Assembly: GCF_002571385.2 (NCBI RefSeq)
Contig: NW_019217784.1
Location: forward strand, 977,218 to 1,041,217
Direction: 5' to 3'
From: Stylophora pistillata
Taxonomy: Eukaryota
Length of the DNA: 64,000 nucleotides
Part shown: piece by piece, positions 247 to 64,000 of the stretch
Layout of the letters: each line of letters starts with the position of its first letter
How positions within the stretch are numbered: position 1 is the stretch's first letter
Notes under the pieces: generated by a model
What the model was told of the DNA's origin: nothing
Seen by the model: the letters and a program-made list of their open reading frames with translations, nothing else
Database searches by the model: none
Position numbers and translations under genes: made by a program

Positions 247-330
247 CCTTCGAGAAATAGAATTCACCCTATTCTGCACCGATCCAAATCCGCCTGTCTT
301 CGACGATTTATTCACTTTATTTCGAGACAT
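247..330 (-). CDS. Probable first coding exon of an unidentified gene continuing beyond the left edge (MSRNKVNKSSKTGGFGSVQNRVNSISRR)
   Basis: ATG at 330, 28 open codons, ending at a strong donor AGG|GTAAGC (246-241). No recognisable homology. Confidence 0.35.
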
Positions 331-1958
331 TTGGGTAAATTGTTCTTAATTAATCAAAAACACAGTGATTCAAACATAATTAAAGGAATATAAGATCAGC
401 AAAATAAAAGTCAATTGTTACTCCACTAAGTCGAAGTTTCCGCCATTTTTAATCACACTCGAACCCAGGCATCTCGCTTTATAAGGATACGAAGGAGCAC
501 CCAGGCCTTCTGTTGGCTTGCTCTTCAATGTACTCATGCAGACATGCAAATGCATCACAGAAAAAACTTCCACGAACTTTAAACCCACGTAAACTTTTCG
601 AGACCCATTTAAAAAATAGGGACTAAATAAGTAGTGATCCCCTTGGGAGTCTAACAAAAAGTTAAACAGTTATGATGTCAAAAACAGTCTAATTTCAAAA
701 ATGGCAGTGATAAATTTTTACACAACAGTTAAAATCTAACATTAGACATCATTAACCATAATTAACCATAATTAACTCGACTTACGGGATTTTCCCTAAA
801 AGAAATTCTCCCTAAAAGAAATTCTCCCTAAAAACTTGGGCGTTTATATTCTTTTGTCATATGTTCAAACACAGAACAAACGGGATTGTTGGAGGAAAAC
901 AAACAATCATATCGCTCTGCTGGTATGAACAATGTTAAATGTGTTAAAGAATATATTTTTTTAACCAGATACTTAATGCTCGTGATGACCGCTATTTGAC
1001 TTGCAACGCATGCAGGAGTCACTCGTCTGGTAAGTTCTACTTCGAGGAAAATGGGACCTCAGTGCGTTACGGGAGATTTATGGACATGGCCAACGTTTAC
1101 AGTAACGCTGTCAACGAGTTGCGCGTTACCATAAAAAAGAGGAAATCTGAAATAAGCTGTCAGAAAAACTTGTAAAATTGAAAAAAAAATCCCGCAAATG
1201 TGACATAATCAAAAGCGGTCATTTGTGAACATGAACTGCGAGTCTCTGAATAAAATCTTGTGAATACCTCATGATAATCTTCCATTTATATAACAATGGT
1301 TTAATAACTGGCAACGCAGCTATCGATAAAACATGATATAATGCGGTTATCTGTGCTAAAGATAACATGTCTTGGTGAAAATTAAGACACCCTAATCTTT
1401 CAAAAAAAAAAAAATTCTCTCGGATCACCGTATATCAGTGTAAACCCTTTACTAGCTGTAGCACAGTGTTCCTATACTCCTGGGATTTTCTGTCCCATTC
1501 ACAAGCATTATTAACTCTTGCTCAACCTTTTCTTCCGAAGGTTCACCCTCTCCTTTCTGGGTGTCGTTTAATTTAAAACTGTTGGGTCTGCTGCCCAGAG
1601 CATATAGTACCCAAATACTCGTCGTTATCCATGGGGTGCAGTTTTGCACCCCCAGGGATAAAAAATTAGTGTAGCCTAAAAGTTTTTCAACTTTACCTCA
1701 GAGGGCAAGGAAACCAATACCTCAAGAGCACGCCTTATCATATCCTAATTATAAAATTTGATTGCTAATGTGATCCTACATCCGACGCATTAAAGAAGTT
1801 TTACACAAAGCTCATTAACTGGGTTTGATTAACAAGTACTTCGTATACAAAGTTGCTCGCTGTCATTCTCTATGACAACAGGGTGCAAAACTTTATTCGT
1901 AAATATCGTTTGTAAATCTCTTGGCGTGACAGTTGTTAAACTCTTCAAATTATACGCA

Positions 1959-4900
1959 TCAGAGTTCGTCCTGGTCCGCAAACGGTCTACTGTCGTCAAA
2001 ATTAATTCCATCTTGACTGTGATTGTAGTACAGATTTGCGGAGTGGTTCTTTCCCATGGCATTCTTGACCCGTGAGCGGAGAGATGGTTTCAGAGTTCTA
2101 CTGTTCACTGAAAACTTGAAGGTCTGATCATGTGATCGACAGTAGCGATACAACACGATACCAACAATGACAGCAATAATGACAACGAGAATCACCACAA
2201 TAGCCACTATTTTCCCAGTTGAGATCGGTTGCTTGGACGCCACAGACGACGACACGGTTTCTGGTTGAAAAGAAAAAAGAGACTGAGTAAACCAAGAAGG
2301 AAATCCAGTCTTTTCGAGATTCTTACGACCGTACAAAAAATCGTTAAAGGAACATATTTTCATTGTCACCATAGTATCTACTGTCCACGGTTACCAAAGC
2401 AAACCCAACTTACTTTTCTGTGCCCCACCTTACTCTAACATTCTCTATCCCATCCTATTTCATTCCGTCTTTTCTACTTTCCCATTTCCATCCCATCATA
2501 TCCTAATAATTTGGATATATCAACAAAGTTGAAATGGTAAATTGACCACGGTTAAGATTAGAAAAGCTGACGTTTCGAGCGTTAGCCCTTCGTCGCTGCC
2601 TCGACGAAGGGCTAACGACGAAGGGCTAACGACGAAGGTCTCCGACGAAGGGCTCCTACGAAGGGCTAACGCTCAAATGTCAGCTTTTGTAATCATTACG
2701 GTGGCCAATTTACCATTTCAACTTTGTTGATATATCCAAATTATTTCGTTACTCCCACCGACGCAGCCCCAAACAGTTTCTTTCGAAACTACCAGCCTCC
2801 ATCCTATCCTACTCTGTTCCATCTTTTCTACTTTCCCATTTCCAAACTCTACTTCGACTCGATTAATTTCCCACCCACAAATCTAACCCTTACTCCAATT
2901 CACCCAGTTCATTCCATCCCTCAAGTTGTAGACTTACGTTTTCCTGGCGCAATACCATCCACATAAAGGGAAGCTGATTCGCTCACTTCGCCATATTTAT
3001 TTTTATACACGCAGGTGTACATTCCAACATCATCGACAGTAGCACTAAGTACCCAGAGTGCATTGTCGTCTGTGCTAAAAATTCTCGTGGATTGCTGAAT
3101 GGGTTTAGAATCCTTGACCCACGTCATCGAAGGATTTGGATAACCCATGCCAACACAGAAGAAAGAAGCGTTGGCATTTGATAGAATATGAACGTCCTTT
3201 GGAGGAATAGTGATAATTGGTGGACCTAAGAATCAGATACAGGGCAAAGGTACATAAATAAAAAAAAAACTAACAAACAAATAACATTACTGACACGCTT
3301 CCAGCATTGTTTGTGAATATAGCGATAAACAAGAGTGCATTCTATATCATAACCAACAACAAGTGGTATAACCCCGGTTAAGTACTTTTGAGGCAATAGC
3401 AGCCGTCACTGAATTTCACAAATTTGAACACCCTTGCCCAAATCATAGAGTATTTATAAAATACTCTAACCTTAACTTACCTCTGGTTACTAATTCTCTC
3501 CTTAAAGAGAGAGGGGTTAAATGCTTAATAGTTTACAGTCTCTCTCTTTGATGTATGTGCTGATCCAAGATAACAAATTTTGTACAAGCTTAAGATACTT
3601 ACCACGTAACAAAAGTGACGTCTCTTTGAGTCCAATACCGCCACGATTCCATGATATACAATAATAAATCCCAATGTCTTCTTTGCTCAAGTCCTTTATT
3701 AATAACCGGCTTGTAACAGTATTTTTAGCCGAGATATTTGTAGTGATGGTGTGTTTACTGGCATTCATTAACAATTCACCATCCTTCTTCCAAGCTACTT
3801 TAGGTGTGGGAATTCCAGTCACTTTACACTCTAATTTTTCTGTGGCCCCTTTTTTCCCGACAGTATTTGTGGGAAATACTTCGAACATGACAGTCACTAT
3901 AAAGGAATGAAAATGGACTTAAATCTTCACATCTGTTCAAACAGTCCGTTGAACACCACACAATCTCTTGGTGAGTGTTCTCAGACGGGTACATGTGAGG
4001 CTCTACCTACCAGAAAAAAATTCAACTTTCTTGTATGATACCTGCTTCTAGTACGTTTCAAAATAAAACTATTAAAAGATTACAAAAGGTTGCAAACCAC
4101 TTTGTAATTCGGTGGATTTTTCAAACAATACCCACCCCATCGAAAGTAAATGACACTATACCAGGCTTCCCCATGTTGCCTAAATGCCATGTGTACTTGG
4201 AAACTACGACTAGGCTAAGGTCGTATGCCTATATTAAATCTGTACTCGCGAGTTAGTTTTAAAGAGAAGGATTTCTACCCGCTGGTGTACTTGTTTACTT
4301 CTGCTGACGGTTAAAGAGAATAAAATCCAGCGGAAAAATACATAGTGAAAACAAATATTATACTTACGTCCCACAGTGAGGGTAGCATTAGCACGGGCCT
4401 CTCCTAGTTCATTAGTAAGAGAGCATTCGTAAGAACCCGCCTCTTCAAACGTCACTTTCTTCACTTTAAGAGTATAGGTGTCGTCTAAAAACTCCAAACG
4501 ATCTGAGAATTTCAGAGTCTTTCCTTTGAACTTCCACGTTATATTGCTCGGAGGAAAACTGGACACTACACAGCTCAACACTGCATCATCACCCCTTCTG
4601 ACATTCGTAGACACGACTCCAAGTATTCGTGGCGCCTCTGTAAAGGAAGAACAATGTACGAGTTGAAACAAAGGGGTTTCTTGCTGGATGACGAATTTTA
4701 ACTCCAAACGAGAAGCTGATCACATGACATCTTTATTTTAGGGCTACGAGGGAGAATGCATTCTTTGATTTTACCGCTGCATCCTTTCCAAAAAACTGTT
4801 TAATATTGTTCATACAGCACCAAGTCATCATTGGGCACAACAGATACGTTCGTAAAAAATCTCGATCCACAGCAAAAAGAACAAAGAATAATGTTGCATT

Positions 4901-47500: not shown

Positions 47501-50500
47501 TTCAGATGAAGAAAGTTATTCTGAACCTTATGACCTTGGCAAAGTCACATTGTTAGATGAGCAAGCTAAGAGAATGTCTCTGAGGGGAATGCGTCCATCT
47601 GTAGATGAACAGGAGGAAGACAGATTCAGGAAGCACAGTGAAACTGGTGTCAAAAAGTAAACATTTTGATCTGTAATTAGTTGTCTTTTTTTGCTATCAG
47701 ATTATGGTATCTTAAATTTGTAATCCAATGAATTTAACCAAGATCACTCTGCATTTATGCCCAATCACCAGACAAGTTCAAAACAAAATAATCACTTTTG
47801 TCGAGTCCATTCTTGAATAACAAAAGTACATACCAAAGGGGCCATTATGATACTGTGATTGGACCAAAAAACTAAACTTAAATTATTTCTTAACATTATT
47901 TTTTCATTTGTGTTCTTATCAGTTGTATTGCTTGACAACTTGCATTTGTACTCTTGATGACAAACCATGTGACAATCAGCCATGTTCATTTGATTTTGTC
48001 ACTCAGTGCTTGTTGCAAATTTTCTTTTGCCTTAGTGAACTATAACATTCAGTGTCCTTTATTACATGTAGTTAAATTGAGTAGTTGAAAGAAAAGACGT
48101 ATTGTCTTTTTTTTTAACTCAAAAACACATTGTGTATATAATTATACTTTGTCTTACCCTTTAATGTCCATTTTTTTAATAGACAGCAGTCTCCCAGCAG
48201 GGATCAGAGACCAGCAGATGATTATGACTCACCTTGGGAAAGTAAATCTTTTCTAGGAATGCAGCATAAATCTCCAAACTTACCCCAAGAGAGACCTCAA
48301 GCTCCTGTGACTGACATGCGCCCATCTGATGATTATGACAAACCCTGGGAGTGGAACAAGAATATTAATCTGAATGGCCATACACAAGTTCCAAGACAAC
48401 AGGAACCTGTTCAGTCACCTAAAATAGATGCACGACCCCCAGATGACTATGATGCTCCTTGGGAGTGGTCAAAATCTGGTGTTGCATCAAGGGTCAAGGT
48501 TCCAAGGGAAGGAGAAGCACAGGTAACAGGGTGCTCTGTTGCCCCTTCTAAGCCACCAAGAACATTTGGTGGAGATGGATCCCCTATTGATCCCGCTTTG
48601 CCACTGGCGCAACAGGGGTAAGTTGTATGAATGAATTGTTATTCCCTGTGGAAAAGGTGTCCTAGATTGTGAATGTTGTACTTGCTATGGCAAGTAGAAT
48701 AAAGTTTTTTCATTAAATTTTTGGGTGACCATTTTATGATTTTAGGTCTCCAAATTTTGACTCAACCCTTTAATTTCTAATAGTGACTTGCTTCTAATTT
48801 CTCCTTACAATTTTATGATCCTTGAATCACACATAGAGGTGACAAGAATAAAGGAAATGATCACCCAGTGAAGAAGCTCCTGATGGTTAAATGAATTCTC
48901 CTTGTCAGCTCCATAGGAAATGTAAAGAAAACAGTCTGGAGAATGTGCATACTGATGTTGGGGTGTAAACTTGAGCTTTGAGCCCAGGAGTAAGTTTGAG
49001 TGTTGTTTGTATTGTCTTTGTCCTGATCATTAATTTTTATGTTTCAATCTTAAAATACAGCTGGTATCATGGACCTTTAAAGCGACTGGAAGCAGAGAGA
49101 CTCCTACAATCTGCTGAAGACTGCAGCTTCCTACTGCGACAATCAGAGAGTAGTAAAAATGACTTCTCTCTGTCTGTCAAGTAAGGATTTGTTTATATTA
49201 GTTATTGTCTCTTTACTGTTTTTTCAATAGTAATAGTAATAGTAATAAGTTTATAAGAACGATCCTTCGCAGTAAAGCACTATTTGAGCAATAGTGGAAA
49301 TCAGACCTGAAAAAAATTTCAGGCCTGTACGGGATTCGAACCACTGACCTCTGCGATACTAGTGCAGCGCTCTACCAATTGAGCTAACAAGCCAACTGGG
49401 AGCAGGCCATCAAATTAATTCGATATAAACCCGTAGATGATAAATCGAACAACAACAAACATATGAAACATATGAGTGAACTGCGGTTATGAGACGTATA
49501 TAAGAACGATCCTTCGCAGTAAAGCACTATTTGAGCAATAGTGGAAATCAGACCTGAAAAAAATTTCAGGCCTGTACGGGATTCGAACCACTGACCTCTG
49601 CGATACTAGTGCAGCGCTCTACCAATTGAGCTAACAAGCCAACTGGGAGCAGGCCATCAAATTAATTCGATATAAACCCGTAGATGATAAATCGAACAAC
49701 AACAAACATATGAAACATATGAGTGAACTGCGGTTATGAGACGTATATAAGAACGATCCTTCGCAGTAAAGCACTATTTGAGCAATAGTGGAAATCAGAC
49801 CTGAAAAAAATTTCAGGCCTGTACGGGATTCGAACCACTGACCTCTGCGATACTAGTGCAGCGCTCTACCAATTGAGCTAACAAGCCAACTGGGAGCAGG
49901 CCAGTTGGCTTGTTAGCTTGTTAGTTGTTAGCTTGTTGGCTTGTTAGTTGACTATCCAAGAATTATGGATAGTGGAGAAAACTTATAGCGTTTCTTCGAC
50001 CAACTTCTCTTCTAAAGGGCTCTGAAAAATATTGACTTTGTCAAAATCTAAACACTAACCAGGGGTTTTCGGAATGTTGATGAAGTATTTTTTCGTTATG
50101 ATTGTAGCCCTGGTTTGCCGAGCCTTTCCGTCCTTGCAGTTTGATCTCATGTGTTCGACCGCCTGCCAGAACATGAGAGGAGCCTCGCTTTGTTTGTCGG
50201 ATAAGTAACGTTTGAACCATATAATNTGTTTGTTGTTGTTCGATTTATCATCTACGGGTTTATATCGAATTAATTTGATGGCCTGCTCCCAGTTGGCTTG
50301 TTAGCTCAATTGGTAGAGCGCTGCACTAGTATCGCAGAGGTCAGTGGTTCGAATCCCGTACAGGCCTGAAATTTTTTTCAGGTCTGATTTCCACTATTGC
50401 TCAAATAGTGCTTTACTGCGAAGGATCGTTCTTATATACGTCTCATAACCGCAGTTCACTCATATGTTTCATATGTTTGTTGTTGTTCGATTTATCATCT

Positions 50501-53326
50501 ACGGGTTTATATCGAATTAATTTGATGGCCTGCTCCCAGTTGGCTTGTTAGCTCAATTGGTAGAGCGCTGCACTAGTATCGCAGAGGTCAGTGGTTCGAA
50601 TCCCGTACAGGCCTGAAATTTTTTTCAGGTCTGATTTCCACTATTGCTCAAATAGTGCTTTACTGCGAAGGATCGTTCTTATATACGTCTCATAACCGCA
50701 GTTCACTCATATGTTTCATATGTTTGTTGTTGTTCGATTTATCATCTACGGGTTTATATCGAATTAATTTGATGGCCTGCTCCCAGTTGGCTTGTTAGCT
50801 CAATTGGTAGAGCGCTGCACTAGTATCGCAGAGGTCAGTGGTTCGAATCCCGTACAGGCCTGAAATTTTTTTCAGGTCTGATTTCCACTATTGCTCAAAT
50901 AGTGCTTTACTGCGAAGGATCGTTCTTATATACGTCTCATAACCGCAGTTCACTCATATGTTTCATATGTTTGTTGTTGTTCGATTTATCATCTACGGGT
51001 TTATATCGAATTAATTTGATGGCCTGCTCCCAGTTGGCTTGTTAGCTCAATTGGTAGAGCGCTGCACTAGTATCGCAGAGGTCAGTGGTTCGAATCCCGT
51101 ACAGGCCTGAAATTTTTTTCAGGTCTGATTTCCACTATTGCTCAAATAGTGCTTTACTGCGAAGGATCGTTCTTATATACGTCTCATAACCGCAGTTCAC
51201 TCATATGTTTCATATGTTTGTTGTTGTTCGATTTATCATCTACGGGTTTATATCGAATTAATTTGATGGCCTGCTCCCAGTTGGCTTGTTAGCTCAATTG
51301 GTAGAGCGCTGCACTAGTATCGCAGAGGTCAGTGGTTCGAATCCCGTACAGGCCTGAAATTTTTTTCAGGTCTGATTTCCACTATTGCTCAAATAGTGCT
51401 TTACTGCGAAGGATCGTTCTTATATACGTCTCATAACCGCAGTTCACTCATATGTTTCATATGTTTGTTGTTGTTCGATTTATCATCTACGGGTTTATAT
51501 CGAATTAATTTGATGGCCTGCTCCCAGTTGGCTTGTTAGCTCAATTGGTAGAGCGCTGCACTAGTATCGCAGAGGTCAGTGGTTCGAATCCCGTACAGGC
51601 CTGAAATTTTTTTCAGGTCTGATTTCCACTATTGCTCAAATAGTGCTTTACTGCGAAGGATCGTTCTTATATACGTCTCATAACCGCAGTTCACTCATAT
51701 GTTTCATATGTTTGTTGTTGTTCGAGTAATAAGTTTATTGAACACTCCCTGAAAGGGTTTTTCAGTGAACAGTACAATACAATAACAATAAAAGATATAC
51801 ATGTATAGTAAAAAATATAAAACTATATGTTAAAAACTATTTTGTTGTAAGAAACTCATTCAACATTCTTGATTTTAAAGTTTTCTTAAAGTTAGTGAGG
51901 TGACTTTACACAGTTTCAAATCACTGTCTAACGAGTTCCATAATTTTACCATCCTATAGTGAAACGATCCCTGACCAGCAGGGGTTTTAAAGAAAGGAAT
52001 ATTAAGTTGTTAAGAGTTTCTTGTTATTCGGTCAGATATCTGTCTTCTTGTGGCAAACTGTGACATCAGATAGGTCGGGGCACGGTCCATCATGCACCTG
52101 AATGCAAGAATAGCATCTCAGAAGTCAGAAGTTAACCTGCTTTTTTATGAGGAGCCACTCCAATTTCTTAAGTGATGGAGTTATATGTTCAAATTTCTTT
52201 ACACCACTAACTATCTGAGCTGCGAAGTTCTGAACAATTTGTAATTTTTGCATATTACTGGCAGAGATGTTAGACCAGACTGAAGAGCAATAGTATAATT
52301 TGCTGAAAACAAGCATTTGCCTGACTGATCTGAGCCAATATACTCATGCAAGATGAGACTGTCACTGAGATGTGATTGTTGAATAACCGCCACCCAGTTA
52401 GCCCAATGGATAGTGGGCTGTACTGTTGTGCGGGAGGGTTCGAGCTAGACCAACACTAAGATCTTAAAATAATTGAGAAGAACTTGCTACCTTTCTTTTA
52501 CATCAAGAAATGGTTAGATATTCTAGTCTTCTCGGATAGGGACGAATAAATGGAGGTCCCGTCTCCTGCAGGGTTGGGGTAGAAAACGTTAATTTCCCAC
52601 AGACGAGATTACTGTGTGATGGATGTCCTCCCCTGGGGTGATGGGGTGGGGTGGGTACAAAAGGGGTTAGGTGTCAATTGGGAAGAAAGTTCTGTTCCTT
52701 TCTCCTGCCATTCCCATGGCAAATGAATTAAATTCTTAATTCTTAAAATTCTTAATTCGTAAATGACAAAGTAGGGTCGAATGTTAACTCAAGAGCCTTG
52801 ACAGACTCAATGCAAGTTAAGAATTTACTTTGCCTTGAACTTACTGAGAATTTTTGTTTTTTTTTAATTAATATGTTTTACATTCTGAAATCATTATTTC
52901 ATGAGGAACATTAGGGAATTCCAAACAAAGTTCTCAAATAGTGTTTTGGTTTCATTTTGTTGTCACTCTGATAAGTACAGGTAAGTTGAGCACAACTTTA
53001 CAACAACCAACCCTTGTTTTGGCTCTGAGTTTGAGTTACCTTAAGTGAAAGCTCATTGCCCACTTCATCAATGTAAATTTTTTTCCATTTTATTTCCACT
53101 TAGAAATAACAACTCCTTCATGCATCTAAAGATTGTTTGCCAAGGCAACAAATACATCTTGGGACAATTTAGTAAGCCATTCAATACTGTGCCAGAAATG
53201 ATTCACTACTATTCCCTAAACAAGCTTAACATTCGAGGAGCTGAACACAAAAAACTGTTACATCCAGTGGTGCCCCCCCCTGAATATTTTACACTGGAGC
53301 CTGGTGGATATTCCACAGCAAGCTGA
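41506..53326 (+). CDS. SH2-domain adaptor of the SHB/SHD/SHE/SHF family
   Basis: Exons 41506-41865, 47265-47656, 48183-48617, 49061-49180, 53104-53326. N-terminal PPKPPRRDY; repeated YxxPW(D/E); IDPALPLAQQG-WYHGPLKRLEAERLL..FLLRQSES..FSLSV..FMHLKI..YILGQFSKPF.TVPEMIHYY..KLNIRGAEH..LLHPV. Confidence 0.92.
43503..43650 (+). mobile_element. 3' fragment related to the tRNA-SINE at 55352
   Basis: GTAGGAGACGTTAATTTCCCACACACGAGATTACTGTG..TGTCCTCCC shared with 55563-55620; A-rich tail. Confidence 0.7.
44897..45180 (+). repeat. Recent direct duplication of ~130 bp (offset 154 bp)
   Basis: 44897-45026 identical to 45051-45180. Confidence 0.9.
50060..50225 (-). pseudogene. Stray RGS-domain-like exon fragment with splice donor and intron sequence
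   Basis: 55 open codons IIWFKRYLSDKQSEAPLMFWQAVEHMRSNCKDGKARQTRATIITKKYFINIPKTP, then G|GTTAGT; matches the RGS pattern F..FL..E.SE..L.FW.AVE....A..I..KY. Confidence 0.65.
50295..50366 (+). tRNA. tRNA-Thr(AGT)-like pseudo-tRNA module. Also at 50542, 50789, 51036, 51283, 51530 (+) and 49322-49393, 49569-49640, 49816-49887 (-).
   Basis: 72 nt; 7-bp acceptor stem GGCTTGT/ACAGGCC; D arm GCTC/GAGC; loop CTAGTAT; A box TAGCTCAATTGG; B box GGTTCGAATCC; T7 run just downstream. The T stem has two mismatches, so it is unlikely to be a translational tRNA. Confidence 0.55.
51725..52320 (-). mobile_element. 5'-truncated LINE (L2/CR1-like) 3' fragment; its (ATTACT)n tail continues at 49227-49254 on the other side of the array
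   Basis: LVFSKLYYCSSVWSN..KLQIVQNFAAQIVSG.KKFEHITPSLKKLEWL is a typical ORF2 C-terminus; AATAAA before the tail. Confidence 0.85.
52385..52650 (+). mobile_element. Degenerate copy of the tRNA-SINE at 55352
   Basis: AACCGCC.CCC.GTTAGC.CA.TGG head and body (CTAGTCTTCTCGGATA.GGACGAATAAA..CCCGTCTCCTGCAG) shared with 55352-55690. Confidence 0.8.
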
Positions 53327-55691: not shown

Positions 55692-57166
55692 AGTGTAAAA
55701 ATTATTGTCTGTGCCAATTTGATTTCTTACGCAGCTTGCATAAAAAAGCATATGGGATTGACTCAGCTTTGTTTCAAGAGGAATTGATTTCCAGTTGGCT
55801 TTGAAATTGAAAACAAACTTATTGTCTTATGAGTTTCTTAGAGATATTTTCAATACTGGACTTGAGTAACGAAGAATAACAAAGAATATTTTCATTACAT
55901 GCTGAACGCTCTTCAGTTAGCATGGTTTCAAGAAAAACTTTAACGAATAAATTTTTAACAGTTGTTTTTGAGATAATTTCCCACATTCCGTATAATTTCA
56001 GGGTGGCTCGAAATGGTTTCGTTATCTTTTAACAGTAATTCTTCGATGGATCATGGCTTTCACACATTTAGCACTGAACTGCATCAGCATATCACGTATC
56101 AGAATCTATCCAGTCTTTATGTACTGACAAGTCAGAGCCACCTTCATGTTTTGATAAATTCAAGGTGGCTCTGAACGTGGCTCATAACAGATTTGTTCAA
56201 AATTTGACAAAACGATGAGAATTGATGATAAGCCGATACAATTCAATGACAAAAGATGAGTTAACTAAATAAGGTGTGTTTTTAAGAGACTGTAGTGCTA
56301 CCGAGGTAACTAGGTATTTCATACACAGTGGCATCCGAAGTGACCACATCTTGACAGAAATGATTTAAAGTTCTCTTCAATTGAGGATCTTGTTCCTGCA
56401 GACCAGCAAGATGTAAGAGTTTGAAGATTGTAATCATTCTTGTTCAAACATGAGTCAGCGAAATTTCTCTGGTAATGGTTTGTTTTAATGTCTACCTTGG
56501 AATGGGAAAAGTCCATTAAACAATGAACTTCATTCTTAAGATGATGCCTTGTTTTGTTTGCTGCGAATAAACGAGATGTGAAATGTCCAAAGATGAAAAG
56601 GCAGCTTGCTGAATCAAAGAGAGCCAGCTAAACGCTCATGGCTGTCAGTTTACTACTTCTTCCGTCCGTTCATTAGCTCAGAAATTTGTTAAGAAGCACA
56701 TTTCTGTTTTTATTTATTTAATTTTTGAGGCACACAGGCACCCAGCACGGTTAAAAAAATTGCTCGACAAACTACTCTGAATTACTAGCCGAATTAAACA
56801 CAACGATAGACGTTGTTTTAAGAAAAGTACGAATGTTCCGGGCTCAGTGAAAACCTTCTATTAATTTTACTAGAATTCTACTTAACTACTGTACTGCGTA
56901 ACTAAGGCCTGGAAATATGTAAAAGTGAACAGTATATCTTTTTTTCAAACTTGCCTATTCTTCTAAGAACGACTATTTTTTTATTTATCACCCGCCGGGC
57001 CTCCGTAACAAGGCAGGAGAAAAAAAAAAAAAACAATTGTTTATTTTTAATTTTTTATAGTACCTCCGACCCGTGACAGGTTGTCAAGTTTGTAACACGA
57101 ACACTAATAGCAAACAGTTTTATTAAACCCTCAAGTCCTCCATACTCCAGTTTACTTTTCATCATC

Positions 57167-60100
57167 ATGTTAAGCAAGTTGACGTTGTTCTTCATTTTGG
57201 TGGCCCCTACAAAAACTTCTAATACCGCCGATTTAGGACACAAAGGAGCTCTCAAAAACTCAGGTAAGAAGAGGCTAGGATTTTTTTCTTAATTCCTGTT
57301 AAACATGCGAATGAAATTTTATACTTAGTTACACTAATGAAGCCAACTCCGAGGACACAACGATCTTGGATGATGAATTATAGTTTTTAGGAAGAGTCAA
57401 ACAAAACGTGCTACTTCGCTTTTGTAATTCATCTTATTGCATAATGCCTCGTGCCCAAAACCCATTTCACCCATTTCTACTTGCTTGTTCTCCAGTCATT
57501 CAGTGAATGGCTCAAATTGAAGCTATCATCTCTGAAAGCCGGCAGACCTTGTCACACTGGGTTATCACTGATCTTATTTAACTCGAACATATTCTCGAAA
57601 ACTCGGCTACTTTTGGTCGCTTTTCAAGATGTCAAGTACAAATCGTTCATCGCGTGTATCACCAGTTTTCAGGAGCGGGTTTAATGTTGGTGTTCACGGT
57701 AGGGGGGGAATAAACGCAAACTGAACAGGGTCTTCACAGACCGCGGGTGAGTTTTCCTCGATAACATTCAAGACAAGTCAAAGAAATTTTAGGTGCATCA
57801 GGCAGGGGTCGAGCCTATGGCCCTCTAGAAAAGTTGTAGCTATTTACGACTCAGTTATTGAAGACTCGAGATACCTCAGCAATCAAACCTGCCGTTTTCA
57901 TTCATATACTTGCGAAAAACATAACTGATTGTTTTTCTTTACAACGCTGCTAAGCGCCAATGAGTCGCCGCTATTCAATTGAAACATAGAAACTAACAAG
58001 GAAAGTTATCAGGAGGCTTCTTTAACACGTTGATTTTTGTAAGGTCGCAAGAATTTCTTTTTTTAGTAATTATTTCAGTAAAAACACTGACTTTGTCTCT
58101 GTCTGAGATTGTTTGCTTTTTCACTGGTCTAGAAATAACAGTTGGCCAAAGAAAACCGAGAGATGACATTTAGTTAGATTAGTTTATGTCGAGTGCATCT
58201 GTTCCCTGTAAATTTTATTCCTTGAGTAAATGGCTACCATAACTACAATCCATGTGGCCTTTTATGTCCTCATTTTCACCCTCAGTTTGAAAGACACTTG
58301 TTTCAAATTTTCGTGACCTTCTCCAAGGCCACCTGCAATCGTATGAAAAGAACATGCAACGATAGCCCGCTGAAGATTTTAATGAATTTTACCATGGCAG
58401 AAAGATCAATTACTAAGGCGAGTATTCCTAACAAAAAAATATTACATTTTTATCAAAATTTGTAGAAAAATTGAAAAACAAACACAACATGTTTTTACCC
58501 AGTTTACTTGGAGTTTTTCATTCAAGGTTCCTCTTGTAAGATCCATACGTTTTCGCTATCCGTGCAAAGTTTTGGTGTCTAGGTGGAGATTCGACAAGAA
58601 TACATGTTTTTTTTTTATTTTTTTTTTATAAACATCAGTCACCTGTTCTCTGGCATGATGAGCCATGTTACATTATCTATCCGAGTGTTACTGGTTGCCA
58701 CGTGGACATTACTGAAACAGTTCTTCACAGTGGCTGTGGGTGTACATTGTCTTCTTCGTGAAGAAGGTTCAACAGTGACTCAGAGAGAATTGACACATCA
58801 CCTGGGAATGCAAATATAATTTGAACCAGACCTTACTCTTCTTGTTGGGGAAAATTCTGCGTGTCATCTTAAACTCAGGTCATGAATGTTTCGGAAGTGA
58901 CCTTTTTTATGTTCATAATTTCGCCTGGACACCAAAATCAGAATTAGTTTTACCCAGTTGTAAACTTTTGGGTAGGGCCACTCTACCCTTGTTAGGGAGT
59001 TTAAGGAAACCAAGAATGCAACAGCAACGGGAACGTCATTAAACAAAAGGTTCGTTACAAATGTTTGTTAATTTCGTTGCGTTCTCAACAACAACGAAAA
59101 TTACCAAACTTTGCGTTATTTAGACGGAAAGTGAACAACGACGACTATTTGTTTTTTTTTAATTTCCATATATAATTTAACGCTGTGTTCCATATTCAGT
59201 TTTGTAATAGTTTTGACAGTGAGAAACAAACTAAATGACTTAAGAGTATCACGATATTCGAAGGTAAAATAGAAGTTGGTTTTTTAACTGACGTTGTCCA
59301 CGGCGTCGCTGTTGTAGTTTCTTGAGGTCCCTGTTATCAGACTTGACTACCGATTCATTGTTCCGTCAGCGGACTGAACTTTTGAGTCATCAAAATATTA
59401 ATCCGGCAGATGCGAAACGGCGTCTGTAATTAGTAGACGACACTTGTGTATGAAAATAAGTAGGAGCTCTCAAGCATAATTGTATCCGGTTATTTTTGGT
59501 GAAATTCAATAGCTCTTTTCACCATCTTAAATCAGTTTTTCAAAAGGCACTATTTTATACTTGGAAGGTTAAATGGCCGAGGTTTTCCTTTTTTTGAAGC
59601 TCTTTAGGCCAAAAATGGCGATTGCACTTGATTGAAAATGGTGGTTAAACTGAGTGGAGTGCAATTTGGTCCGAATTCATACAAGTGATTTCGAAATTGG
59701 ACGAGCGTGCAGCGCGAGTTTGATTTGAAATCGCAAGCACGATTTCATACCAAAATTGCACGATGCAAAGTTTAATTACTAATTTTTTACATGCATTTCG
59801 AAATCGCAAAATTCAGCATATCATGGATCCGGAGCTGAGCTGGTTTGAAAAAGTTGTTTAAACAAGCCTTGGAATAAGATTAGTCGTTGTGTTTTAATAA
59901 AGATCTCTCGCAGGTTGAGGAAAAGATGCGATTTAGGGCCAAAACCGGTGCGATTCGTGAATAAATCGCATCAAAAAGAGCCAATCAGATTGCGAGGATC
60001 ACCATTGGTTTCAAAATTGATGTAAAAAAGCCCGTACTTTCCTATGTTTTCACCTTTCATGTAGCAGATCGTGTCTCCTCACCAATAATGCAAAGTGATA

Positions 60101-61189
60101 GAAGAGGGAATTGTAAGTTACTGGCCCTGGATAATTGTACATTGATACTGGGCTGTCAAGGATTAAAACAGTCAAAACAGTAGCTTAAACTTCCGTTAAC
60201 AAACAGAAACTCTTTTCCGTTTAATTTAGATCCACAGTTATACCAAAGTGAAGGATGCTACGAAGCAAAGTCAATGCAAGATGCTGGTGTTAATCTCGGA
60301 TACCTTGGTAATTTTGCTATCAGCGAATGCGCTGAGCTTGCCTTAAAAAGAGGTTTCTCCGAGTTTGGTCTTTTTCAAGGAGGCTTGTGTAAAGGTGGAA
60401 GCAATCTGCAAGGAATGGTTTCTGAAACTTCTGTTACCTGCAGAAATGGTGTGGGAGGAGAGGATTCTGTGGAACTGTACTCGCTTAAGCTGTCAGGTCA
60501 GATATCAGTTTGTATTCCTACGCGAAGTTAAAGGTGCCTTCTGATCGGTTGTCAGTAAACAAAACCAAAGGAAGCGCAATCATGGGTCCAATAATCACGC
60601 TGTTTTAACAAAGATAAATCACAGAGGAGACCAATAAGAACTCAAAGTGCTCCTACGTAATGGGCTAAAGCGTGAGAAAACGCGCGAGTGCAAATCGCGA
60701 TCGCTTTAAGTTGGCATTTGATTTGTTAAGGTGATGCTAGTTATCTAAATCTACCGCCAGGAGAACTTAAGTCAAACCGATGTGATTCGACTCACAATTA
60801 GAAATTGCTGTAAGGAAAAAAGTTAAGTTATTGTGTTGAAACGACTCTGTTCGAGCCTTTTCTCTCACTGAAGGTTCCTGTTCAAAATAGAATTTATGAA
60901 TACACCGAGATATGTCCATTTGAATATTAACAGGAAGATAGTCTAAGTGAAACGTTAAAGCTAAACTTACCTTAGTTAACTTAAGTACGTAAATCTGCGG
61001 AAAATGGCTTCTCAATCAATGGAAAACCAAAGTTAAGATAGATTCTCTCCTACTTATCATTGCTAGACCAGAGATATACAAACAATATATTGAAAGTGAA
61101 AAGGGTTCAACGCAGGGTTGGCGTAGTGGTGAGTGCGCTCGCCTTCCCCCAATGTGTCCCGGGTTTGATTCCCGGACCCGGCGTCATAT

Positions 61190-61221
<32 letters not shown>

Positions 61222-63938
61222 CCGAGAGGTTTTTCTCCGGGTACTCCGGCTTTCCCCTCTCCTCAAAAACCATCATCATTTGAATTTATTTAATTCAGAG
61301 TTAATTTGGATTTACACACGACCCCACAAGCTGTTCAGCTTTAAACATTATCGTGTCTAAATAAAGGTGTTATTATTATTATTATTATTATTATTATCAT
61401 TATTATTAAACAACGAAATTTTAACAACAACTGAAACACATTCCTCCCTTTAACATTCTCGAAATTGATATTTTATCTTTCTCACTGACAGCCATTGCCT
61501 GTCCAATTGAGTCTTCGGACAAAGCCAGTAAATCATGCCAGACACAGAGACAACATGAAACAGCTAAAACCAGAGAGGATTACGAACTCAGCAAAGGCGA
61601 TGACTACTTAAAAATTCCACGCATTAACAAGAACACAGCGGAAGTGTTCCTCATGCTGAAAAAAGACCCCTTGGATAATCACTGGATCTCATTGTACAAC
61701 CAAACTATTTACAAAAACTTTGGTCTTTTCTTTTTACTTAATAATTTAACGGGAGGAAAAGATATTGATTACAATAAAGTATACAAGTTCTTCGTTGATC
61801 GTCAACGACATCAACACTTTGTCCGTCCGGTATGGATTACTCTTAGCGATATTTACATGAATTAGCTAATGCTTCTCTAATGAAATCTCGAGTTTTGATA
61901 GTTTTAAACTACCCGGAGATACCTGTGTATAGGGCTTCAAGTAGCTGACTATAAAATATATCTAAAGGAAGCAGGTTATATTATGGTTTTTTAGAATTAC
62001 ATCGTTTCCTTAAATTTGTTGTCACCTATGACCGTCATAGTTGACTGCATTAATTAGGTCTGCATGACCTTTCTTAAACAGTTTGTCGTAGAGTTTAATG
62101 AGCTTATTTCTTTTTTCGTAGGAAGACCAAAAGTTTTTTCGTTTTGCTTTTCAAGACACGAGCAACCCATTTAAAGATGTATCTGATCTGTCTCTTTGGA
62201 GAGATGATGACATCTTTACTGATCAGCGATTGGCTGGTATGAACCCAATGGCCATTCAGAGGGTTTCGAGTCCAGGTGATCAGGCCATCATTTGGATGAT
62301 AACTTACAAAGCGCACTCATAGAGATCATGACATAAATCACTTCACTTTAAAGGCTTTTCATCCTTCTAGATATTTCTTTTCATTTGAACCTTTCAGGCA
62401 AGCGAGGAGGAGTGAGCTGGAAAAAATTGTGTGGAAAGTTAAACCCAAGATTCGACTGGCAAGGAGCGATACAAGACGTGCTTGGAAAGAGTATATCAGT
62501 TAATCGGGTGCGTGTGCCATTTGGGGACATTATTTATGGGTTCTGATGTCACATTCTTTCTTTATAACACTTCTAGCTTGTTGCGTTTGAAGTAGTAGCA
62601 TGGTTCTGTTTCGAGGGGGATGGGGAGAGGGTGGGTTTGGAAGTGGTTTGTAAAAGATTTCTGTTTCGCAGTTTACATTTCCTTGGTGCCACCCAGACTC
62701 GACCCTAAGGCGCTTTTCCCTTGAATGTGCCTTTCTCTCTAAAATCTAGTGCTTGGGACGAGGTTGAGTACGCAAGATGATGTATTCGTCTCGACCGAAG
62801 CTTGTTTAAGAATTAGATGCCTCCAATTTGTAACTACCTAAGTTGAAGAATGTCTTCCTAGTCATTCATTCAATTGAAAGCGGCTGTGTTTAATTCCGAA
62901 ATAGGAGCGTTAATCGTCCCCCTTCCCCACCCCGCATGGAAAAGAGAACACAACGCACAAAGTATGAATCTAAGGAAATGCGTGCTCAAATTTGTACAAA
63001 GACGTCTCAAATACGCAAGCGGCAAAGGTTAATTCAAAGCTCTTGCACCTGTAACAGGCAATACGCGGAGGTTATATCTTCGTGGTACACTATCCCTTAT
63101 ATGACGGACTAAATACGGTGAAGGATCCTCTTGGAGAACTGATGGAAGCAAACTCACCAATCGCCATATTTGCATCTAAACCCAGTCATCAAAAGCTCCC
63201 AAACAGGCTAAAACCAGTGGCCATTCAGATAAACAGTTCCCCAGGTAACATATCCACAAAGTTATACGTTTGCATATTTACCACAGTACCACGAAATTAT
63301 ACTGGAAAACTCTCTACCAACAAATCACGACATAAATGCTGGATGGATTTCACACTTTGCGAAAACATATCAATAAAACCTCGTATCTTATTCTTTGTTC
63401 CAATTAATGATAGATTCCAGTTGTACATCCAACACCACTGAATTTGTTGCTTTGTTGATTTCTTATGATGCCAAAGAATGCAGAGACAGGGAAAACCCTC
63501 AGCAAGCGGTATTCTGTTGCATTAATCAGATCTAACATGTAAAAACTTCCCATCTTACTTCTATTCCCTCTAGATTCTCCAGTTTATACCCCAGAAAATA
63601 GCCAGTTATGGCAGATGGCTAAACATGTGCTCCAAGTTGCAGACTTCGCTCAAACTCAAATTGTGGAACATCTTTACAAAATCCATTTGTATATGGAGCC
63701 TATCTGTGTCTGCATGCATCGGCGCCTGTCAAAATTGCATCCTCTTCACCAGCTACTAAAGCACCATTGTAGGGGTCTGCTTGGAACAAACGCGCTTGGA
63801 TATCCATTTCTGATGGCACCGGGTAATGGATCCATCGAAAAGCTCATGTCAGTTGGTCTACAAGGTGCTTTGACAATGATGAAAAGAGCCTATAAAGACC
63901 TTTCCTGGGAAGAAACGGATTTTTTAGCCAACATTGAG
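57167..63938 (+). CDS. Lipoxygenase with N-terminal signal peptide and WSC-like domain (5' part; continues past the window)
   Basis: Exons 57167-57263, 60230-60496, 61492-61829, 62122-62275, 62398-62507, 63058-63244, 63574-63938, all GT-AG and phase-consistent. LOX motifs WRDDDIFTDQRLAGMNP, LKPVAIQI, WQMAK, QIVEHLYKIHLYMEP, LHPLHQLLKHH. Confidence 0.85.
58993..59333. mobile_element. MITE with AGGGAG/CTTTAAG-type termini
   Basis: AGGGAGTTTAAGGAAAC at left, GTTTCTTGAGGTCCCT at right (imperfect inverted repeat). Confidence 0.5.
61113..61407 (+). mobile_element. tRNA-derived SINE with V-domain-like core and (ATT)n tail
   Basis: A box TGGCGTAGTGG, B box GGTTTGATTCC, core GAGTTTG..GGTTTTTCTCCGGGTACTCCGGCTTTCCCC resembling V-SINE cores, AATAAA followed by (ATT)n. 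Confidence 0.8.
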
Positions 63939-64000
63939 GTTGGTGCTGAATTATCTATTAAATTTTTTATATAAATCGTGTTCCTTAAAACATAATGGAC

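Follow-up and report, generated by a model that had tools for sequence, protein, structure and literature searches.

A stony-coral lipoxygenase gene in which a signal-peptide-like leader and a WSC domain replace PLAT

Animal lipoxygenases are usually regarded as cytosolic enzymes that dock to membranes through PLAT. Can such an enzyme be built for work outside the cytosol? This question is raised by a gene at the end of a 64,000-nucleotide stretch of the Stylophora pistillata genome (NCBI RefSeq assembly GCF_002571385.2, contig NW_019217784.1; C1:977218-1041217), hereafter the window, in which exons for a signal-peptide-like leader and a WSC domain precede those for a lipoxygenase. An earlier note, made from the letters of the window, had described an apparently secreted lipoxygenase with a WSC-like module replacing PLAT. 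We consider it likely that the gene encodes an expressed and conserved stony-coral lipoxygenase of 719 codons, in which PLAT has given way to a cleavable-looking signal peptide and a WSC domain, and that the enzyme leaves the cell or stays in a secretory compartment, tethered on glycans through its WSC domain and active in local oxygenation.

Gene layout and transcript

The sequences and coordinates quoted in the earlier note for exons 1, 2 and 3 were all found in place, with GT..AG borders and matching phases. The gene span that it gave, closing at 63938, proved too short: four further exons lie beyond the end of the window, in a 10 kb stretch (L013) running on past it, whose coordinates equal window coordinates minus 63000. 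The whole gene comprises 11 exons, 2157 nt and 719 codons, and its AG/GT borders and phases agree throughout. The stop codon is situated at L013 4311-4313, +3311 to +3313 beyond window base 64000 (approximately 3.3 kb). Exons 8-11 were located by tblastx against orthologous loci and their borders were set by eye. Four RNA runs were compared with window positions 56800-62600; two of them, X4 and X11, are polyA libraries from different studies. The resulting features are as follows.

57145..57166, plus strand: 5' untranslated start, minimum extent, from the start of an X4 polyA contig; no ATG between 57100 and 57167
57167..57263, plus strand: exon 1, ATG (57167) and signal-peptide-like leader; phase-1 donor TCAG/GTAAG
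60230..60496, plus strand: exon 2, one WSC domain by its fold model; 267 nt, AG/GT borders, symmetric phase 1-1, four Cys
61068..61455, unstranded: interspersed repeat within intron 2, outside the mRNA, seen from RNA word depth and loose-ended contigs
61492..61829, plus strand: exon 3, Cys-pair linker (C-x11-C), then the predicted helical lipoxygenase N-terminus (QRQHE..REDYEL); AG/GT borders, sequons NQT and NLT
62122..62275, plus strand: exon 4, lipoxygenase motif W..D..F..QRLAG.NP; PF00305 match, RNA joints to exons 3 and 5
62398..62507, plus strand: exon 5; RNA joint 62275/62398, 50-59% identity in orthologs
63058..63244, plus strand: exon 6, with ..PVAIQINSSP; AG/GT borders and phase, 65-73% identity in orthologs
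63574..63938, plus strand: exon 7, catalytic core with H-x4-H (EHLYKIHL) and Gly (GTNALGY); PF00305 match
L013 1128-1234: exon 8, from tblastx to orthologs
L013 1828-1909: exon 9, from tblastx to orthologs
L013 3104-3322: exon 10, holding AQHSAIN, from tblastx; PF00305 E 1e-5
L013 4080-4310: exon 11, ending ..LPYPYLLPAWIANSIHT, from tblastx; the stop follows directly

In both polyA libraries, one contig runs from exon 1 through exon 2 into exon 3 with joints 57263/60230 and 60496/61492 (X4: 746 nt, depth 31.5; X11: 702 nt, depth 8.3). Raw reads of a third run, X24, contain the former joint in three reads and the latter in one. Both junctions proposed in the earlier note are thus exact in two polyA studies and in the reads of a third run. 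The note had allowed that transcripts might begin at exon 3 or that exon 2 might belong to another gene; the RNA contigs run through exons 1, 2 and 3, and exon 2 is spliced to both of its neighbours. Joints between exons 3 and 4 (61829/62122) and between exons 4 and 5 (62275/62398) are likewise present in RNA. A 1691-nt X4 contig extends from exon 4 toward the 3' end, and past 62507/62508 its loose end reads into the start of exon 6.

The X4 contig starts at 57145, immediately after Illumina adapter letters, and no splice joint into exon 1 from upstream was seen in the RNA runs over 56800-62600. Exon 1 is therefore taken as the first exon. Leader, WSC-like exon and lipoxygenase share one transcript.

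Some RNA signal is found within the introns. A low-depth (2.7) X4 polyA contig links the intron-1 stretch 58790-59047 to the acceptor of exon 2, of which it covers only 20 letters. The stretch may represent a minor alternative 5' exon; of the open reading frames (ORFs) listed there, the longest (58821-59042) stops just before the donor. The intron-2 repeat 61068-61455 reaches an RNA word depth of 268-3905, and the numerous short contigs over it have loose ends that lead into other sequence. By eye the repeat resembles a tRNA, but a tRNA origin was discarded as ARAGORN calls none.

Domains of the predicted protein

Sequence searches and fold models were made exon by exon, and genome scans cover the whole assembly of 398 Mb in 5513 contigs. 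Exon 2 was searched in a library of 1.84 billion representative proteins. The 54 matches at E <=0.001 comprise multi-WSC proteins and short ORFs; the latter are 42-61% identical over the matched stretch, which in most of them spans nearly all of exon 2. Pfam WSC is matched by 14 of the 17 aligned exon 2 homologs (best E 1e-13).

With the homolog alignment as input, AlphaFold2 modelled exon 2 at a predicted local distance difference test score (pLDDT) of 89.4. Foldseek ranks yeast Wsc1 first among structures similar to this model (7pz2, E 2e-5, TM 0.75), followed by Kremen and by the WSC domain of Fusarium glyoxal oxidase. VIA-align gives the same order (Z 11.9, 9.9 and 9.4, respectively), with PAN/apple domains at 6-6.7. 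Root-mean-square deviations (rmsd) of the WSC superpositions are 2.0-2.6 over 81-84 of 88 residues. As modelled, exon 2 has the WSC fold, and the WSC-like four-Cys domain of the earlier note is borne out, clear of PAN/apple. Its Cys are C9, C33, C53 and C70; among aligned homologs the last two do not vary, and at least 90% have C33. Exon 2 is single copy in the genome; matches to the other WSC exons there are partial, at 28-41% identity.

The lipoxygenase part was compared with Pfam PF00305. Its cut-off of 23.6 bits is passed by exon 7 (59.3 bits, E 3.4e-16) and exon 10 (24.7 bits, E 1e-5), and exon 4 aligns to profile positions 186-214 (E 0.0018). The whole-genome PF00305 scan also matches C1:1040805-1041119. 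The closest solved relatives of exon 7 are 11R-lipoxygenase (3vf1, E 4e-17) and coral 8R-lipoxygenase (3fg1), and both His of its H-x4-H motif align with ligand His of these two enzymes. The H-x3-N motif is AQHSAIN in exon 10, and the C-terminus reads ..WIANSIHT (..NSIxx). With exons 10 and 11 as queries, the PDB sequence search returned nothing at E 1e-3 and 1e-2, respectively. By its motifs, the product of exons 3-11 is a cnidarian-type lipoxygenase with the full predicted set of metal ligands.

Exon 7 also carries a Gly (GTNALGY) that aligns with Gly of the coral 8R enzyme. Following Coffa and Brash, we take it to be the residue determining R or S configuration; in their work of 2004, Gly at the stereo-control position reportedly goes with R-lipoxygenases.

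We wondered if a PLAT domain could be hidden in or near the gene. Exon 3 opens with the Cys pair (IACPIESSDKASKSC) and continues with QRQHETAKTREDYEL; both Cys, R19, R27, Y30 and L32 are invariant in alignment A2, built from four orthologs and a paralog on contig C31. The QRQHE..REDYEL stretch presumably corresponds to the helix right after PLAT in human 5-lipoxygenase. Exon 3 has no Pfam match; a profile built from five sequences found nothing in the PDB sequences, and the ESM Atlas gave no usable match. Its AlphaFold2 model, of low confidence (pLDDT 59.9), contains helices only and no strands. With no PLAT match, no PDB match and an all-helical model, if one of low confidence, a degenerate PLAT in exon 3 was rejected.

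None of the 118 PLAT (PF01477) matches found genome-wide lies near the gene on C1. PLAT exons adjoin lipoxygenase genes at no fewer than eight other loci, on C92 (five), C378 (two) and C14. The transcript passes from leader through WSC to exon 3 with no PLAT exon included, which agrees with the lipoxygenase without PLAT put forward in the earlier note. No catalase-like AOS domain is present in the transcript either, its 5' coding part consisting of leader and WSC and its start lying 22 nt before the exon 1 ATG.

Lipoxygenase matches with no PLAT match nearby were also seen at C16:1422837-1423817, C1257:21953-22973 and C26:90447-92350 and on C2925, C123 and C715. For some of these the open frame is unusually long (354 aa on C16).

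The product of exon 1 is MLSKLTLFFILVAPTKTSNTADLGHKGALKNS. It begins with MLSK (Lys at K4 only), continues with a nine-residue hydrophobic core, LTLFFILVA, and then reads PTKTS, an n-h-c layout. The best Kyte-Doolittle mean of any 9-mer in it is 2.98, and small residues stand at positions 13, 15 and 17 in a polar stretch. Across five divergent orthologs (see below) the sequence of the leader drifts while its n-h-c layout persists, which is typical of signal peptides. The N-glycosylation sequons reported before are present: NQT and NLT in exon 3 and NSS in exon 6. Two of three orthologs retain the NxT sequon of exon 3, and all three have NSS/NCS, a site whose N is presumably common in the lipoxygenase family generally.

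Phase 1-1 exons are typical of shuffled extracellular modules, and to our knowledge WSC and EMI modules occur only in extracellular or lumenal proteins. The conserved shape of the leader, a Cys-bearing module of this kind on a class 1-1 exon, six conserved Cys and the sequons together suggest that the protein is secreted.

Orthologs and a paralog without PLAT

Is this architecture private to one genome? Ortholog contigs were reached through the short ORFs found with exon 2. The WSC exon is followed by lipoxygenase exons, in the same order and on the same strand, in L031 (GCA_044670265.1), L032/L037 (ERZ25071802) and L034/L038 (ERZ25071792). Exons 3-7 are covered in L031 (to the contig end), 3-11 in L037, and 3-8, 10 and 11 in L038. 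Identity is 40-47% for the WSC exon and 50-75% for the lipoxygenase exons (67-73% for exon 4); the ending ..WIANSIHT is identical in L037 and L038. The six Cys, four in WSC and two in the linker, are invariant or nearly so.

In L031, L032, L035 and L036, a leader exon of matching hydrophobic layout with a phase-1 donor lies 1.5-2.5 kb ahead of the WSC exon, and in L030 leader and WSC share a single open frame (P0006). As far as sequence comparison can tell, the WSC-lipoxygenase architecture is conserved in at least three other assemblies, with leader, WSC exon and lipoxygenase exons in shared order, and so is not peculiar to one genome.

The exon 2 search itself yielded no full-length WSC-lipoxygenase: none of the seven long matches scanned carries PF00305. 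Since eukaryotic gene models are sparse in the library and proteins of the present genome may be missing from it, this is weak evidence of absence.

On the ortholog contigs, other sequence extends for 1.9 kb ahead of L030:1911-2300 (JGI sample 3300008014); either that organism lacks intron 1 or the contig derives from partly spliced RNA. In L038, a weak S-methyltransferase (BHMT-type) match lies downstream of the orthologous lipoxygenase (19729-19956, minus strand).

The only other match of exon 3 in the genome is a gene on contig C31.

C31:594390-600090 (loci L027/L012), minus strand: closest paralog, a lipoxygenase without PLAT, from the exon 3 genome match

This paralog is 65% identical in exons 7 and 8, other lipoxygenases 33-44%. 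It resembles the window gene in lacking PLAT, in opening exon 3 with the same Cys pair and in having a C-terminal Thr (..WIPNSICT). It differs in that no WSC exon is found within 12 kb upstream; instead, open frames just upstream of exon 3 (598889-598533 and 600090-599884) are EMI-like (..VCAFEK.., ..CCPGW..GC). EMI is another extracellular module. Against Pfam EMI these frames reach only E 0.15, and a Pfam EMI scan of the genome, too insensitive for this purpose, gave one match, elsewhere. Candidates for a WSC exon upstream of the paralog were discarded: a hidden Markov model from alignment A1 finds the window exon only, and a weak tblastn match (L028 5946-6056) is not WSC-like on inspection.

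Elsewhere in the window, a tandem repeat at 50408-51539 contains five identical 47-codon open frames at 247-base spacing. An open frame at 53045-53326 (plus strand) resembles an SH2-domain exon (..FNTVPEMIHYYSLNKL..) and probably belongs to the upstream neighbour gene.

Interpretation and comparison with known systems

According to the reading we favour, an exported or compartment-held enzyme tethered by its WSC domain, the leader would direct the protein into the endoplasmic reticulum, where the four Cys of the WSC domain and the linker Cys pair would form disulfides. The enzyme would then be exported, or kept in a secretory compartment. The WSC module may bind glycans and could anchor the enzyme where these are plentiful, for example on mucus, on extracellular matrix or on the wall of a microbe or symbiont; such tethering would replace the Ca2+/membrane docking given by PLAT in cytosolic lipoxygenases. 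The catalytic domain would act locally on polyunsaturated fatty acids, oxygenating them to hydroperoxides; the Gly at the aligned stereo-control position makes an R configuration of these products probable.

Several points weigh against this reading. Exon 2 alone scores 20.8 bits (E 4.4e-4) against Pfam WSC (PF01822), under the cut-off of 27.8, and its domain has four Cys, not the usual eight. The leader core is short (9-10 residues), with -3/-1 positions that are only moderately good. The last residue of the protein is Thr instead of the usual Ile; this Thr is kept in two orthologs and in the C31 paralog. The exon 3-4 joint is supported by short contig overlaps (28 letters), a contig retaining intron 3 is also present, and exons 8-11 are backed by orthology only. 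Further, WSC domains can also make protein contacts, as in Kremen, so that glycan binding is not guaranteed.

This last point leads to a different fate for the same protein: it would enter the secretory pathway and act, unreleased, in a lumenal compartment (secretory or venom granule, symbiosome, calcifying vesicle, skeletal matrix), its WSC domain serving for protein contact as in Kremen. Kremen WSC is indeed among the best structural matches (Z 9.9), WSC-domain proteins occur in sea-anemone venom (PMC6627431), and according to a preprint on the proteome of a coral skeletal matrix, eight lipoxygenases are present in its occluded fraction (10.64898/2026.03.24.713908). However, the best match is the cell-wall sensor Wsc1, and Kremen is equalled by the WSC domain of a secreted fungal oxidase. 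No retention signal or transmembrane segment was seen in the protein, whose C-terminus is an ordinary lipoxygenase end, and the supplementary material searched yielded no lipoxygenase of the WSC type. Purely lumenal action is considered unlikely.

The short hydrophobic core, the four Cys in place of eight and the score under the Pfam cut-off would also suit a protein that stays in the cytosol, its leader not being a functional signal peptide and its WSC-like module being a degenerate structural cap substituting for PLAT. We regard this as quite improbable, as the n-h-c layout is kept in five divergent orthologs while the sequence drifts, all six Cys are conserved, and WSC and EMI modules are known only from extracellular or lumenal proteins, the exon being of the 1-1 class typical of shuffled modules. 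Still less credible is a pair of separate genes joined by read-through or chimeric transcripts, one for a small secreted WSC protein (exons 1-2) and the other for a PLAT-less lipoxygenase starting from exon 3. ORFs such as P0006 and P0004 do stop just past the WSC exon, reading into intron 2, and the random-primed run X1 holds unspliced pieces, including a contig across the exon 2 donor. These ORFs are, however, prokaryote-style calls on genomic contigs, and X1 has intronic cover throughout. In each polyA run no contig is deeper than the joined one (31.5 and 8.3), the phases fit, no start codon lies in exon 3 ahead of the conserved Cys pair, and arrangement, phases and Cys-pair linker are conserved in three other assemblies. 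Both a non-functional leader and two separate genes fit the RNA and conservation data poorly.

Together with the C31 paralog, the WSC-tethered enzyme may belong to a small stony-coral clade of extracellular lipoxygenases, in which PLAT was exchanged through phase 1-1 exon shuffling for a WSC module (here) or an EMI-like one (C31), and which would serve host-microbe or host-symbiont oxylipin signalling or defence on mucus, matrix, skeleton-forming matrix and microbial or symbiont surfaces. We offer this wider proposal tentatively and rate it at somewhat less than an even chance.

If the favoured reading is true, animal oxylipins can be produced outside the cell, at a defined glycan-rich surface. 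This would bear on the exchange of lipid signals among coral host, dinoflagellate symbiont and microbes, on mucus chemistry in defence and on the question why skeletal-matrix proteomes contain lipoxygenases. It would also be a clean case of exon shuffling re-aiming an old enzyme, with a parallel in the WSC-tethered secreted oxidases of fungi.

The literature was searched for comparable proteins. In full text, lipoxygenase and WSC domain are paired only in polycystin-type proteins (WSC and PLAT) and in unrelated lists. The term 'secreted lipoxygenase' refers mainly to the Pseudomonas enzyme or to citations of it, with no animal one among the matches listed. Neither a review on stony-coral eicosanoids (PMC5793058) nor a recent cnidarian oxylipin paper mentions signal peptides, WSC or loss of PLAT.

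Among known systems, the nearest solved cores are those of Gersemia fruticosa 11R-lipoxygenase (3vf1) and the 8R domain of Plexaura homomalla AOS-LOX (3fg1, 2fnq, 3dy5), with E 4e-17 and 1e-12, respectively. The coral gene shares with them the aligned H-x4-H ligands and Gly at what we take to be the stereo-control position. These enzymes have an N-terminal PLAT beta-barrel and no signal peptide, AOS-LOX having also a catalase-like AOS domain ahead, whereas the coral gene has leader and WSC, neither PLAT nor AOS, and ends in Thr instead of Ile.

Lipoxygenases secreted by microbes offer another comparison. Fungal manganese lipoxygenases are secreted and have no PLAT. LoxA of Pseudomonas aeruginosa, which has a secretion leader and likewise lacks PLAT, acts on lipids outside its producer (PMC5764228, PMC6702342). 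In sequence comparison LoxA (4g32) is far more distant than 11R-lipoxygenase (E 7e-10 versus 4e-17). Neither LoxA nor the fungal enzymes carry a WSC or other carbohydrate-type module, while the coral gene has animal-type introns and a cnidarian-type core.

The layout of signal peptide (putative in the coral protein), WSC and O2-using redox enzyme is shared with Fusarium graminearum glyoxal oxidase (9n3u) and with WSC/PAN copper radical oxidases (6ryx). The glyoxal-oxidase WSC superposes on exon 2 with Z 9.4 and rmsd 2.2 over 84 residues. The fungal enzymes are copper radical oxidases from another kingdom, in contrast to a non-haem iron lipoxygenase, and since identity of the WSC domains is only 17%, the likeness points to parallel assembly and not to shared descent of the fusion. 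Wsc1 and Kremen have the same fold and an extracellular location that matches the coral leader. Their WSC domains have eight Cys and reside on membrane receptors, unlike the coral protein with its four Cys, linker Cys pair and no membrane span. With no description of the leader-WSC-lipoxygenase architecture found in the searched literature, the coral gene adds a new domain architecture to an enzyme family already known and does not amount to a system of a new kind.

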